Origin: Trichoplax adhaerens
Taxonomy: Eukaryota; Animalia; Placozoa
Assembly: GCF_000150275.1 (NCBI RefSeq)
Contig: NW_002060948.1
Coordinates: 1,920,918 to 1,984,917 of the forward strand
Reading direction: 5' to 3'
DNA length: 64,000 nucleotides
Part shown: piece by piece, positions 300 to 28,516 of the stretch
Position numbering within the stretch: the stretch's first letter is position 1
How the letters are laid out: each line of letters opens with the position of its first letter
Translations under genes and position numbers: made by a program
Notes under the pieces: generated by a model
The model's input: the letters and a program-made list of their open reading frames with translations, nothing else
Databases searched by the model: none
What the model was told of the DNA's origin: nothing

Positions 300-1361
300 A
301 AATCCGCTTCCGGAAGTCAATACGCCCAGTCAGCATTGACAGCATTATTGTTAAGCCTTCAGACAGGACAAGGGAATAATCCACCAGTTCAGCTATTACC
401 CATCAAAGCGGAAGGTATTCATGTTAACCTTATACGTTATCATCAAATTTGAAGACATTTTATGTTTAGCGTGCTAAAATATCGATCAGGATATGTCTAT
501 GATAGATTAAATAGCTAAAGTTTCGATTTTAGGAATCAAATAGTCATTTCATCTTTAAAACTTCGAAATGGAATTTAATAATTCTCTCATGTTGTAGGTT
601 TCAACGCTACTGTTATCGGTATCATCATCGCTATTGCTATTTTTCTGCTTGTAGCTGTCTTTTTGTATCGACGACGTCGACGTAAACAAACTGCTCAAAA
701 GAATTCTGTATCTTTCGAGCAACAGTTATCGTCTATCGCTCCAGCTACAAGTATAACTAATCCACTGTACAAAGAAGGAGATCTGGATTTTCCAGATCTG
801 CCTGCTCGGAAAGAAAGCCGTTTCGATAGTCCTGACCTCGACGGTGACGAGCAAGTTCAATTGCATAGTACCAGAAGTAAATTTAGCGTTGATAGCTTTG
901 CTAAGCGAAATCAAAACTATTCTAGTACCTATTTTGAGAATCCTGCCATCAATGATAACGAAAGTGCTCACCAGCAATACCCTGAAACTAGCGTACCTAA
1001 TAACGGTATAGTAACCAATACAAATGGCAAGGACGGTAGCCTCTATAAATCAGTTAACGGCAAAGGTGATAACGACAAGGTTACATTATTTATGACAAAG
1101 AAATCATCTTCCAAAATGCGTGAACGAAGTGATAGCTTACCTACCGATACCACGACTTTACAAAAAGGAAATGGCCTTCAAACTGCCGACGATTATTATT
1201 ATCAAAATTACGATGATCAATCATTGGTTAGTGGAAACAGAAGGAGGAAGAGATCGAGCATAATGAAGAGCATGAGCGATATTTACAATCATGTTACATC
1301 AAACGCATCCAAGAAGAAGTCCTTCAGGGACAGCCATGATGAAGGTTCACTTATCAATTAA
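300..1361 (+). CDS. 3' end (last two exons, 300-414 and 598-1361) of a type I transmembrane protein, probably a Jagged-derived paralog; 5' part lies outside the window
   Basis: tgtag|300 exon reads KSASGSQYAQSALTALLLSLQTGQGNNPPVQLLPIKAE, ends G|gtattc (phase 1) and splices in frame at tgtag|598 to GFNATVIGIIIAIAIFLLVAVFL (TM), then YRRRRRK (stop-transfer) and a ~230 aa polar tail with NPLY. The penultimate exon is 115 nt, phase 0 to 1, identical in length and phase to exon 27131-27245 of the Jagged-like gene at 25.5-28.5 kb. Confidence 0.75.
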
Positions 1362-3274
1362 TCAAGATAGTATCTAGATCTTTTCTCCTTCTTTATTTAA
1401 TCGATCAACAAATCCTATACTACCTAAACAATTCATGAAATTTCCTTCATGTTTTAGTTAATACAAAATGTAAATACGTCAAACTTTTTCATTAATTTTC
1501 ACTTTAGCTTTTTGATTAATAACACATGGACGGTAAACATCATAAGTTTGCTCCATTAACTCTTGATATGATGATAGTAAATATCTTTCTTGATATATTA
1601 TGCCCTTTGATATAAAAGAATACGTATAACTACATAATAATTTTGAAGGACTACTTCTAAATCCAAAATTTCTATGCTACATTTTATAAACTGGAAGGTA
1701 TTAAATCAATTTTTATCCGTTAAAGAAATGGTCATAGTATTTTTTACACTTTATTTGAAAGTTGAGTGTCAATATACAGTAACCTATTTTTAATTGTACC
1801 TGCTAGTTCGTTTTGATATTGCATATTTACAAAATAAGATTTATAGGTACTTATTAATATAACCATTTAATTTCTTTATGCTGCTCAATTTAGTGCATCT
1901 TTTATAGCAGAATTACAGTCGTTTACTTGAAGTAATTTAAATTAAAAGCTTATATGTAGAAATCGATTACATCTATTTTTTTAAATATCATTTTTATTTA
2001 GCAATAGCATAAATTGTAACAAGTACCTACTCCTTATTCATCAATATCGTGTCAAGGGTCATATGTATCGTCTAGATATGCCAATTATTTTCTTACTATT
2101 TTAAAGACATACAGGAGGAGCTGTAGTTTCTTCCAATTTTAATTAACTAGTTTTACAAGTATTATCCAGCCTCCTAAAAACTGCGTAAAAATCTTTTAGT
2201 TTAGATTGTATTTGAAATCTCTGCTAAAACATCACAATAACGGACATATCGTGATTGATATATTACACCAAATTACAGCTTACCAATTATCGATTGCAGA
2301 TGAGAAAATAAATTGAAGATCTTAATAAAAATTAAAATAAAGGCTCTTAAAACTATTATTAACGGATCAATCTCAAACGCATCCAATAATCAGAGATTTT
2401 TAAGTTCGATATATCTTTCTACGAAGGCAATCGACTTAAAGGTTCAGTAGTATTTTGTTACTTTAAATTGAGAATCTAATCAAACTTTCATTAGCCTTTA
2501 TTTTAATGAATGATAAGACTGCAGGTAACAATTACATCTGATATTCATACAGCTAGATTGTATAGTCTACTTAAGTAATCAATATTTTTTATAACCATTA
2601 CATTAATAACAGCAATATAAATTTCATACTATTAATATATGGTGAATACTATGAATTAAAACCAATAAGCGAAATACAAATATCTATGCATGTATTCTGA
2701 AGACTTTGTTTAATGAGGTACCGGTAATATTCTAGCTCACAGTTTTTATATTAACGCTATCCGATGATCATATTATATTAGCATATTCCCGGCATTTACG
2801 AAATCGGTTACCAAGAGCAATCTTGGAAGTAGAATAATCATTTTAGATAGTTGACTTTTCAATCTTTATGGATTATTATATATTTCTGATAGAAATATAT
2901 CAATAAGAGTCTAGTATAATAACGTGGTAAGTTTTTTTCGTGAAATTGTACGTGTATTTGTATTTTATTGCTATTTTCTTCGATATTACCACTCTGTAAT
3001 GTTGTACTGTTTACTCTATTCCTTCGTTTTAATAAAGATGCGTGGAATACGAATGGTTAAGTTACTACACATACAAAATGATTGAATATGAACATATTGG
3101 GATTAAAGATCGATTGTAAGTACAAGTAGCAGCAACATGAATAACAATTTCGTCATTTAATCGCAAAATATATCTTAATTTATTCATTATTACATGTTAG
3201 GTCTAGATATAGCCTAATTTAATTAAAAACATCCGTATATCTTGGATTCTCCTCCTTCGAATCTCATCAGGAAT

Positions 3275-25554: not shown

Positions 25555-28516
25555 GTATCTCCAGTCTATGCAAATCCATGTTCAAGTAACCCTTGTAAGT
25601 ATGGACTTTGCCAGCGTCTTAATGATACAAGCTATTTATGCCAATGTGATCAAGGTTATTGGGGATATCAGTGTCAATATAAACCTTCGGATTGTAAATG
25701 GTCGATAAAAGGATCTAATGGTATGCTAAACTGAATTAAATGCGCTAGTTTAATTTCGCTTTGCTCTAGATATACCTTACTAGATCTTGTAACTGGTATA
25801 TATTCCATTCTTAAATGTTCTATCGCATTCTTATCAACCTGCTTGTGAGGTGATCATGATATGGCTTTTGTTCTTTCATATGAATACTAAATTATGTAAA
25901 TCTTGAACAGTTTTTTAATATTTTTACACCTACTATATCATGATATATTTTCATTTCTTTCATATGACTACTAAATTACGTAAATCTTGAACAGTTTCTT
26001 AGCGTAATTTACTGTCTACAAAGAGTCGATACAGTGAATCATAAACATAGATATAACTTTATAGGCTAGTTTCGCAAGTCAAAGTCTGATCGCTTATATT
26101 TTTACAGCTTCAGTAGTCTATCCAACTGGAAGACAGTGGAAAAATCAATGCAATAGCTGTTATTGTTTGCAAGGAAAGGTTATCTGTAGTCAGGTAAAGA
26201 ATTTAAATAGCAATATATTTACGAGGATTGGTAAATATCGTAAAGGAGAATTAACAATATGTACTTTATTCTGACACTGTTCTATCAATTTATTACAACA
26301 TTTCCAGTGATATAGAAACGAAATGTATTAATACAGGGATTCACGCTCTGTGATAAAATTTTGCCCACGTAATGAATGATAACATTAATTTTCGAATCCT
26401 CTGTTAATTTTTAGCTATGGTGTGGTTTAACTTTTTGCCAGAGTGGGAATGATTGTTCTGAAACATCAAAGCCTTGTACTGTAGTGCCAAAATCCTGGTG
26501 TCTATCAACATCTTGCTCCCAATATGGTTACTGTAGTTCTACAGAAAATCAAATAGTGACAGATTGTATACGAAATAGGCCATTGCAAAAATGCATCTTG
26601 AGAACCGTTTATATTGATATAAGTCAATTCACTCAGGTTAGTGTGTTAGCTTATAAATTTATGAACTAATATTAAAATAGGTGAAGTAAAGGTATTACTA
26701 TTTAATGATAGACTTCTGAGTAATACAAGATCGTGAGCTTATGCCTTTTATCCTTCGTTTAGAATATAACTGTCGAGTCAATTTGCCAAGAAATCAGATC
26801 TATAAGATCCATACAGTATTATACTAATACCAGCATTACTATTGGATGTCAATCCAATGCTTCTACTCTTTTTCAAGCCCGATACCGTCAATTATTGATT
26901 GCAATCGTAAGTTGACTGTTGTGATGAGTATTCCATGCCTATTCTATTTAGAAATAGGTTAAAACTAGAAAAACTTTGAATACGTGTATTTATCGATATG
27001 GTTTGATAGAAATGTAAAGCAATACCGAATATTGGACGAGGAATAGCTTATGAATATGAATGTATATTAAGACTTTGCTTAAAATAGTTACGACGGGTTA
27101 AGAAATGATAAAATATCTTTATCATTTTAGTCATCCCCTAAGATCAGTGCTGCAGAATTAATCATGAATGATCTTAATCAAACATTATCTGGCCCTTATA
27201 TTCGTGGAAATCTTCGCCATATTATCTTTACACTACCAACTACTGGTAAGAGATACTAAAAGTATATAGATTCATCAAATACCTCTATATTAGCGAAGTA
27301 GAAATGTATTTATTTTCTATATGCAATTGACTAAAGATATTAATCCGTTAGAGGAATTAAAAATTTTTCGTCCCTAAATAACAACATATTACAATTTATG
27401 CTCGAAATCAAATCGAGAATTGCCTACCGTATAATCTTGATAAATAAGCGATAGATTCTATAATGTATTGCATGTATCGATGTTTGTTCTGTGAGCTATT
27501 TTCATATTTATGTGCCAATTTTTATCGATTGGAGATTTCATGGACCGAATTAATGTTACATATTATTCTTTATTGCTCATCTCATCGATTAATTTTACAT
27601 ATTTCGACTAGTGCCATCTTTTATACTACCTTTACTGATTACTGGGACGGCTTTATTAATTTTGGTGCTGATTGCAACTGCTTGGTTAATTAAGCGCAAA
27701 TATGATACTGATTCTCAAGATCAGATTGACACCAAGAAATCGGAATTATCCAATTTCATTTTTAAGAGGCATTTTTCTTTCAGCAAAGGAAAACCAAAGA
27801 CGCAAGAAATAACAGCAAATCCTATCTTTGTTGATGAAAATGAGGCAGCATGGAAAAGGAAAAGCTCAATTCGTGCTTCTGCTAACTTCTTTCGTGGGGT
27901 TAAACCAAAACGAAAAGCGTATGAAATTCGTAATAGCCGCAATAAAGGCAGAGGCATATCACATAAGAAAGATGGAGGAAATGATGATTCTTTTGCTGGG
28001 CATGACAATAACAATACCGGTAATGGAATAACTGTACGAGAACTTACCACCAATGATTATGGCAATTCAAGCCAGGTAAATCAGCATCAAAATGAAGATA
28101 ATATTCTCTCTGAAAATGGGCTTATAAATCAAGATGATAGAAAGGGAACTAGTGGCTATTCGGATATATTATCGCATAGTTTAAGATGGATCGCAGGAAG
28201 GCGTAAATCGAGTGTGACTTTAGAACAGCCTGGATATGATATTCAAGGACAAGATATGACTAGCGATATTAAAATTGTGAAAGTAAATGATCAATCTGAG
28301 AAACAAGAGAATATTTATCGGCGGGTTGTAACAGGAGATAATGTCAAATTATACAATGCGGAACAAGATAATATTAAAACGCAGACTGTAGCACATGATA
28401 ACATTGACTTTCAGCCTGAAATTCAAAATAATATCGACCAGCAAGCTGAAAAGTTTGATCATCATACCAATCTACTGACTGAAACCGAAGAATCTGACGA
28501 AAGTAAGATCTTATAG
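25555..28516 (+). CDS. Miniature Jagged/Serrate-derived membrane protein (1 EGF, vWC, juxtamembrane domain, TM, ~275 aa tail); first exon unresolved
   Basis: Exons, all GT-AG and in frame: 25555-25720 (VSPVYANPCSSNPCKYGLCQRLNDTSYLCQCDQGYWGYQC), 26108-26193 (GRQWKNQCNSCYCLQGKVICSQ), 26415-26636 (LWCGLTFC...), 26763-26906 (NITVESICQEIRSI..ITIGC..LLIAI, compare Jagged1 [19 protein letters not shown]..IHVAI), 27131-27245, 27612-28516 (SFILPLLITGTALLILVLIATAWLIKRK TM plus tail). Intron positions match the gene at 3.3-14.4 kb. Confidence 0.85.

Follow-up and report, generated by a model that had tools for sequence, protein, structure and literature searches.

Three neighbouring genes for Jagged-like membrane proteins

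The stretch of DNA analysed here, 64,000 nucleotides of the Trichoplax adhaerens genome (C1409:1920918-1984917; the window), carries three neighbouring genes, on the plus, minus and plus strands in that order, for type I membrane proteins that resemble the Notch ligand Jagged/Serrate. With regard to both identity and architecture, they very probably belong to a real, expressed family of six members that descends from a Jagged/Serrate-type Notch ligand. A preliminary description, made from the letters of the window alone, had proposed three adjoining type I membrane genes in this arrangement and a locally expanded Jagged/Serrate family with a dismantled Notch-binding module. Exon mapping bears out the former, and for the latter the N-terminal profile, the juxtamembrane profiles and the loss of the DSL domain agree.

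The window DNA has about 32% G+C, the exons are short and the introns run GT..AG. The genome searched comprises 105.6 Mb in 1414 contigs, and all domain searches were run exon by exon on the spliced gene models. We number the genes of the window 1 to 3; gene 1 is also gene C in a series with paralogues A and B further upstream, and F labels the paralogue behind one domain match. The three juxtamembrane exons are called JM1, JM2 and JM3, and the vWC plus juxtamembrane region is called CRD. Of gene 1, the window holds the last two exons.

300-414, plus strand: penultimate juxtamembrane exon, 115 nt, phase 0 to 1 (AG/GT sites, frame)
598-1361, plus strand: last exon, with transmembrane segment IGIIIAIAIFLLVAVFLY, RRRRRK stop-transfer sequence and a polar tail of about 225 residues with NPLY

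The remaining exons of gene 1 are found on the same strand, as far as 19 kb ahead of the window. Its upstream exons, which could have turned out to be those of an unrelated family, belong to the same one: a two-exon MNNL domain ending VKCINSWMGSLC, a collapsed DSL domain, 12 EGF exons and an EGF1-2 pair, followed by a very long EGF array, vWC, JM1 and JM2. Further upstream lie the two paralogues A (minus strand) and B (plus strand). The family thus has six members, five of them in a cluster of about 90 kb and the sixth at C1409:4257525, 2.3 Mb off, so that the proposed local expansion stands but involves five genes, not three. The positions of the C-terminal introns are common to all members. 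On another contig, C1287:4748-10604 mirrors the 3' part of paralogue A (C1409:1863263-1870012) with identical match scores; it is probably an unmerged haplotype, which would leave six loci and not seven.

Exon chain and expression of gene 2

Gene 2 runs on the minus strand from 14442 to 3275 in 23 exons and encodes about 1316 residues, with 21 EGFs in total, the EGF1-2 pair being EGFs 8 and 9.

14302-14442, minus strand: exon 1, 5' untranslated region, ATG at 14370 and signal peptide (X7 and X8 contigs end here; splice 14302 to 13933)
13547-13933, minus strand: exon 2, first half of MNNL/C2, with an N-glycosylation-rich insertion of about 33 residues (RNA joints; leave-one-out hidden Markov model)
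13229-13436, minus strand: exon 3, rest of MNNL/C2, with one C-x8-C loop at its end (RNA joints; leave-one-out hidden Markov model)
12877-12999, 12543-12656, 11198-11314, 10982-11101, 10744-10860, 9873-9989 and 9691-9807, minus strand: exons 4-10, one EGF each (RNA from two or three studies)
9008-9071, 8787-8848 and 8554-8625, minus strand: exons 11-13, EGF1-EGF2 (DOS-type) pair (RNA joints)
8019-8135, 7597-7713, 7294-7410, 6473-7183 and 5863-6207, minus strand: exons 14-18, EGF array (splice sites, phases, Pfam EGF/EGF_CA)
5151-5260, minus strand: exon 19, first half of vWC, phase 1 to 0 (Pfam VWC E 7.6e-6, 26.6 bits on the half domain)
4790-5020, minus strand: exon 20 (JM1), end of vWC and Cys-rich module, beginning VWCGSVSC, 11 conserved cysteines
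4457-4594 and 4211-4352, minus strand: exons 21 (JM2) and 22 (JM3), remainder of the juxtamembrane domain
3275-3510, minus strand: exon 23, transmembrane segment and 54-residue tail, stop at 3275-3277

Transcript contigs from four sequencing runs were aligned to positions 8500-14499 of the window. Twelve splice joints are identical in three of these runs (X5, X7 and X8), which come from three independent studies, and all twelve read CT..AC on the plus strand, that is, GT..AG for a gene on the minus strand; the contigs are at most 7531 nt long. These joints fix exons 1-13, in unbroken phase, and the start of exon 14 (8135) is visible in loose ends of the RNA. The splice model, for which a comparison with RNA had been proposed, is thereby confirmed for exons 1-13 in the contigs of three studies. 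Exons 14-23 are predicted from AG/GT sites, again with unbroken phases and no stops, the frame remaining open to the stop at 3275. The seven single-EGF exons 4-10 are all of phase 1/1, and exons 14-18 encode 12 EGFs (1+1+1+6+3), several of the calcium-binding type; in the two large exons, Pfam EGF/EGF_CA recognises 6 stretches and 3 stretches, respectively.

These data also bear on whether the genes are decaying duplicates of a lost Jagged gene. Loss of domains and the truncated gene 3 would be in keeping with such pseudogenes, but the 23 exons, free of stops and with their splice sites intact, the spliced transcripts in three studies and the conservation of all cysteines among deeply diverged paralogues make this the least probable of the explanations considered, and one we give hardly any credence. 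Indeed, the paralogues are only about 25% identical, yet 11 of 11 cysteines of JM1 are kept, which argues for long constraint.

Two further observations were made on the EGF part of gene 2. The EGF of exon 10 (9691-9807), which directly precedes the displaced EGF1-2 pair, has eight cysteines and not six. One X5 contig is unspliced over 9334-9989, where it includes the intron that separates exons 9 and 10 and reads on into the following one; it represents either a retained intron or pre-mRNA.

Gene 3, a mini form

The protein of gene 3 is XP_002113298.1 (TRIADDRAFT_57309), of 546 residues; its orthologue in Trichoplax sp. H2, RDD37201.1, has 567 residues and was automatically named 'Protein jagged-1'.

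23511-23591, plus strand: exon 1, ATG and signal peptide MVVTTKILLSLLYYWMLPVLIFSFSYQ (both models; donor CAG|gtaaat)
25555-25720 and 26108-26193, plus strand: exons 2-3, a single EGF and the first half of vWC (Pfam EGF E 1.6e-4, VWC E 5.8e-6)
26415-26636, 26763-26906 and 27131-27245, plus strand: exons 4-6 (JM1, JM2 and JM3), end of vWC and juxtamembrane domain
27612-28502 and 28790-28869, plus strand: exons 7-8, transmembrane segment V-PSFILPLLITGTALLILVLIATAW and a polar tail of about 300 residues with NPIF

The gene had first been delimited at 28516, where read-through of the donor at 28502 would indeed stop; both annotated models end at 28869 instead, and the signal-peptide exon 23511-23591 is added at the other end. 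The 144-nt JM2 exon (26763-26906), which encodes the Jagged-like 'ICxxIR' part, is skipped in the T. adhaerens model and present in the H2 model, where it is exactly the exon predicted from the paralogues. Its omission from XP_002113298.1 is either an annotation error or frame-keeping exon skipping. The interval separating genes 2 and 3 (14.5-25.5 kb) holds no open frame resembling MNNL or DSL and none for another EGF. Gene 3 thus amounts to a mini form, made up of one EGF, vWC, the juxtamembrane domain, a transmembrane segment and a tail of about 300 residues, with neither C2 nor an EGF1-2 pair.

Genes 2 and 3 had been said to share the vWC, the juxtamembrane domain, a transmembrane segment starting F-x-L-P-L and the positions of their introns, and the exon phases support this. 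The common set, in equal phases, comprises the first half of vWC (1 to 0), the end of vWC with the Cys-rich module (0 to 0), the 'G-T-T..IC..LR' exon (0 to 0), the penultimate exon (0 to 1) and the transmembrane exon, which starts D-FVLPLI in gene 2 and V-PSFILPLL in gene 3. For genes 1 and 3, the shared penultimate exon was likewise recovered (300-414 and 27131-27245, both 115 nt and phase 0/1), whereas the claimed likeness of their tails was not: a similarity between the two was rejected at a BLASTP E-value of 5.9, and they have only composition and NPx[FY] in common. In genes 1, 2 and 3 alike, basic residues come after the hydrophobic transmembrane segment.

An NPx[FY] motif stands 25-45 residues after the transmembrane segment in four tails (NPLY at about 759-770 in gene 1, NPIF at about 27818-27829 in gene 3); among further tails, L022 has NPIF and NPAF, and L012 has SPVF. 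At the same distance behind the membrane, a Jag1 fragment carries IKNPIEK, a stretch that is the Mib1 N-box, in which the Asn is pivotal, and MIB/HERC2 domains exist in the Trichoplax genome. The tail motif, taken by itself, could hint at regulated endocytosis through a signal of the Mib1 or PTB type.

A probable Jagged-type module at the C-terminal end

A profile of the JM1 exon, which starts with VWCG, was built from six paralogues (A3, 74 positions) and scored against 1.84 billion proteins at an E-value of 0.001. Six proteins passed: the gene 3 protein itself and five short fragments from sequencing-run assemblies, which read VWCGPRPC...NCANITFTFNKE or VWCGRKPC...NCARLTLHF and which we take to be vertebrate Jagged-1 and Jagged-2. 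Among the matches in these 1.84 billion proteins, no other vWC family appeared. At their C-terminal ends the fragments extend into the Pfam family PF23575 ('Protein jagged-1-like, predicted ferredoxin-like domain'), with an E-value of 6.8e-5 in one case, and one fragment is listed with a precomputed PF23575; a relative, P0019, of the Jag1 C-terminal type, contains the whole domain at 122 bits.

Direct comparisons with hhalign gave 95% and E 4e-8 for JM1 against the Jagged fragment P0004, with all cysteines aligned, and 94.8% and E 5.6e-8 for the JM2 profile (A4) against P0019; the JM3 exon profile had no detectable similarity to the Jag1 fragment. Searched against the PDB, the JM1 profile found no match, since no Jagged CRD sequence has been solved there. 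Conversely, PF23575 run over six frames of the whole genome pointed to two places only, both of them JM2 exons of this Jagged-like family (25.4 bits in paralogue F, 17.4-18.6 bits in gene 1), while genes 2 and 3 alone gave none. The domain spans three exons and each search sees a single one, which is why both scores stay under the cut-off of 27 bits. By the JM1 and JM2 profiles and by hhalign, the juxtamembrane domain thus appears to group with Jagged and not to fall outside it.

The exon boundaries point in the same direction. In the vertebrate fragments the frame starts ...Q before VWCG and leaves the cDNA after NKELM[AS]P with V (GTx), where P0019 continues with GLTTEH. In Trichoplax, VWCG follows the AG directly, the JM1 exon ends 14 residues past its last cysteine before GT, and the next exon begins G-T-T. 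As judged from the protein fragments, two phase-0 introns around the VWCG exon therefore appear to be conserved with vertebrate Jagged. Furthermore, the start of the transmembrane segment in genes 2 and 3, F-[IV]-L-P-L, is shared with FLVPLL of P0019.

Several points weigh against a descent from Jagged or against the gene models on which it is based. The JM1 search returned no full-length Jagged, only nameless exon fragments. Taken singly, the exons of genes 2 and 3 all miss the Pfam gathering score for MNNL, DSL, EGF_DL_JAG or JAG1 (PF23575), and the exons for the first half of vWC reach 26.6-27.0 bits in genes 2 and 3 against a VWC cut-off of 27.6 bits (20.8 bits for the annotated gene 3 protein), shortfalls that are partly due to searching exon by exon. 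The RNA of gene 2 covers exons 1-13 and the start of exon 14, with exons 14-23 resting on prediction, and gene 3 relies on two annotated models that disagree over one exon.

A C2 domain followed by one loop of DSL

At the N-terminal end, paralogue B matches Pfam MNNL with 35.5 bits and paralogue A with 21 bits; the model by itself misses the exons of gene 2. Hidden Markov models made from A, B and gene 1, with gene 2 left out, recover its exon 2 at E 1.9e-6 and its exon 3 at E 4.1e-7, and these exons are the best other matches of the models among 3440 open frames. Against the PDB, a four-gene MNNL profile with gene 2 as its first row matched only Notch ligands (DLL4, E 5.7e-5; JAG1, E 1e-3), and a profile of the second MNNL exon (MNNL-b) gave chance ribosomal matches only. 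The MNNL/C2 domain is thus found in A, B, gene 1 and gene 2, and gene 3 is without it.

The only strong match of Pfam DSL (PF01414) in six frames of the genome is a Delta gene on contig C1403, at 71 bits. None lies in the cluster, and the five weak matches are all more than about 1 Mb away. In the gene 2 transcripts of three studies there is no extra exon, and exon 3 is joined directly to exon 4, so that no hidden DSL exon is possible between the two in the transcripts seen. The absence of an intact DSL domain, noted at the outset, is thereby upheld, and neither these transcripts nor the six-frame search holds an exon that would restore one. The genes might still encode canonical Jagged ligands with a DSL in overlooked exons or alternative transcripts: assembled contigs drop rare isoforms, and the RNA alignment covered the 5' part of gene 2 only. 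We regard this as very improbable, as the same exon chain from signal peptide to EGF2 recurs in three studies, the joint of exons 3 and 4 is direct, and the six-frame DSL search is empty within about 1 Mb of the cluster.

Of the DSL, gene 2 retains no more than KC-x8-C at the end of the MNNL-b exon; the six-cysteine domain with its YYG motif is not present. The homologous exon of Delta also has phases 0 to 1 and runs through DRHYYGPGCDIACTPRNDLLGHYTCNDKGQKE to CLPGWKGKFC, and hhalign places the C-x8-C loop of gene 2 on this last DSL loop of Delta (weakly, over 11 columns). Judged by its sequence, the DSL is reduced to one loop, with everything between the first cysteine and the last loop missing. 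The preliminary description had it truncated after the first disulfide, which is right as to size; the loop kept is rather the last one, as its G-W-x-G signature indicates. The deletion of the DSL core is common to A, B, gene 1 and gene 2 and therefore predates the expansion of the family.

It could be argued that these genes never had a full DSL and represent a surviving proto-Jagged, an MNNL + EGF + vWC intermediate similar to scenario II of Gazave et al. 2009. Those authors saw EGF+VWC in Trichoplax and proposed it as a possible intermediate step (PMC2770060), and the DSL core is missing in six of six members. This origin seems improbable to us, because the remnant loop forms the 3' end of an exon homologous to the Delta exon for MNNL-b and DSL, with the same phases and with GW-x-G, because MNNL-DSL ligands occur in sponges, which branch earlier (PMC2770060), and because the C-terminal exons match true Jagged in detail, down to the positions of the introns. 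On the same grounds, we infer that the DSL-less state is probably secondary.

The EGF1-2 pair of gene 2 equals that of Delta in cysteine spacing, in its 2-residue linker and in both intron positions and phases (1 to 2 and 2 to 1). In a six-frame translation of 115 kb, the EGF1-EGF2 linker pattern occurs twice, in gene 2 and in gene 1. Pfam EGF_DL_JAG matches the gene 2 pair partially (E 0.013); genome-wide it gives 102 weak matches and is too unspecific to pick out EGF1-2 pairs. No such pair was found in paralogue B or in the examined part of A, and gene 3 has none. The DSL remnant and the pair are 7 EGFs apart in gene 2 and 12 EGFs apart in gene 1, so the pair is not contiguous with DSL; given its match to Delta, the seven EGF exons of gene 2 therefore occupy the position of Delta's single phase-1 intron between DSL and EGF1.

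Proposed mode of action

The family has kept the signal peptide, MNNL/C2, the EGF array, vWC, the probably Jagged-specific Cys-rich and 'ferredoxin-like' domain, the transmembrane segment and a tail with NPx[FY]. Its DSL core, which begins with YYG, ends with FGH and provides the main contact to Notch EGF11, is deleted, one C-x8-C loop being left over. In gene 2, seven ordinary EGF exons have been inserted into what is the DSL/EGF1 intron in Delta, and C2 and EGF1-2 are therefore no longer contiguous. Spliced mRNA is made, and the proteins would sit in the membrane with C2 outermost.

In canonical ligands, the DSL stretch F-C-R-P-R-D-D-x-F-G-H reportedly contacts Notch EGF11, C2 is said to contact EGF12, and EGF1-3 are said to contact EGF10-8, all in one rigid antiparallel rod. 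Seven EGFs between C2 and EGF1-2 would span roughly 15-20 nm if extended. Because the DSL stretch is deleted and these EGFs separate C2 from EGF1-2, canonical activation of Notch through C2-DSL-EGF1-3 by proteins of this family is very unlikely.

We tentatively favour a modulatory role, in which the proteins may act on the pathway that has Delta as its one canonical ligand, as co-ligands or as attenuators in cis or trans, although our confidence in it falls short of even. Such modulation would use the interfaces that are retained, namely C2, the EGF1-2 pair and the CRD. In mammals, C2 binds lipid. DSL-less proteins with a DOS pair (DLK1/DLK2 of vertebrates, OSM-11 and the DOS proteins of C. 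elegans) are said to act as inhibitors or co-ligands and not as activators. The preference over a role independent of Notch is based on these two considerations: the retained parts have known secondary activities in mammals, and DOS-type proteins without DSL serve as co-ligands or inhibitors. For the CRD, the secondary activity is a weak binding of Jagged1 to Notch1 EGF33-NRR and to Jagged1 C2-EGF3 (bioRxiv 10.1101/2021.02.19.432005). One point counts against attenuation as part of the proposed role. The lost DSL residues are reportedly also needed for cis-inhibition, in flies and in mammals, which weakens the attenuator idea.

Alternatively, proteins of Jagged descent may serve as Notch-independent receptors for adhesion or matrix sensing, with EGF arrays and CRD that bind other partners and tails that signal or drive endocytosis. 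This is a possibility to be taken seriously, even if we would not bet on it. It would accord with the loss of DSL, the central Notch contact, in all members, with the lack of an EGF1-2 pair in paralogue B and the examined part of A and of both C2 and the pair in gene 3, and with tails that differ wholly between paralogues. Yet C2, the EGF1-2 pair (genes 1 and 2) and the Jagged CRD are constrained across paralogues of about 25% identity, and each of the three has a documented contact with Notch or with a ligand in mammals.

A more specific form of the modulatory role seems rather doubtful to us: that one Delta and six Jagged-derived proteins engage Notch without DSL, via EGF1-2 or via the CRD on the Notch regulatory region. 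Were it true, gene 3 would be a natural minimal form of the CRD interface on that region. To our knowledge, engagement through such interfaces without DSL is a ligand mode that has been described in no animal. This reading would also date the full Jagged architecture to before the split of placozoans from cnidarians and bilaterians.

Relation to known ligands and to earlier surveys

Compared with Jagged/Serrate (JAG1/JAG2 and Drosophila Serrate), the Trichoplax proteins have the same type I order of signal peptide, MNNL/C2, EGF1-2, EGF array and vWC, probably the same Cys-rich and 'ferredoxin-like' juxtamembrane domain, the same F-x-L-P-L start of the transmembrane segment, apparently the same boundaries of the VWCG exon and an Asn-Pro motif at a similar distance behind the membrane. 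They differ in a DSL that consists of one C-x8-C loop, in the 7 (gene 2) or 12 (gene 1) EGF exons that precede EGF1-2, in the single EGF of gene 3, which is devoid of C2 and of the EGF1-2 pair, and in tails of unrelated sequence without a C-terminus of the PDZ type.

With Trichoplax Delta (C1403:1208800-1217700), the sole canonical DSL ligand, the family shares an MNNL domain that an intron of equal position and phase divides into two exons, the position of the EGF1 intron and the cysteine spacing of EGF1-2. Delta in turn has a full DSL (71 bits) followed directly by EGF1-2, has about 10 EGFs in all, and has neither vWC nor the Jagged juxtamembrane domain. DLK1/2 and OSM-11 resemble gene 2 and gene 1, and not gene 3, in combining a DOS-type EGF pair with the absence of DSL. 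Their ectodomain, in contrast, is small and made of EGFs only, with the DOS pair N-terminal and without C2, vWC or the Jagged juxtamembrane domain, whereas gene 2 has its pair in mid-array and has kept C2.

Gazave et al. 2009 described Trichoplax VWC with EGF repeats and never with DSL, and took Jagged to be absent from placozoans (PMC2770060). Their 'EGF+VWC' protein is very likely a gene model of this Jagged-like family; that account mentions no MNNL domain, no remnant of DSL, no EGF1-2 pair and no Jagged juxtamembrane domain (PMC2770060). A survey of 2025 likewise did not find Jagged outside cnidarians and bilaterians (PMC12166595). In the literature searched we found no paper on these genes and none naming TRIADDRAFT_57309. 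The resemblance itself is already caught by an annotation pipeline, in the name 'Protein jagged-1' of the H2 orthologue of gene 3.

These genes indicate that, contrary to the published absence, the Jagged C-terminal module, C2 and the EGF1-2 pair are already assembled in Trichoplax. The Jagged architecture would then have arisen at least one node earlier than supposed, or else the assumed absence would be a modification. Within the limit that the Jagged-like family is lineage-specific, it also amounts to a natural experiment, in which six paralogues were long kept without the DSL core, some with C2 and EGF1-2 apart and one in a mini form, and which makes it testable which parts of the Jagged ectodomain have functions of their own.

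Other features of the window

Downstream of the three genes, the window contains a multi-exon gene for a PP2A regulatory subunit of the B56 family (50340-54813, plus strand), three exons of which match Pfam B56 at 66-79 bits. Minus-strand open frames at 32539-33681 and 37501-37818 are rich in Ser, Asp, Lys and Arg, have no Pfam match and include an internal NFKRRRSTRLK duplication and a K/R/S-rich frame. The G+C content is raised to about 0.39-0.40 at 44-48 kb, and long simple or tandem repeats extend over about 42200-46000 and 57000-60200, with open frames TVQYCTVLYSTV... on both strands.

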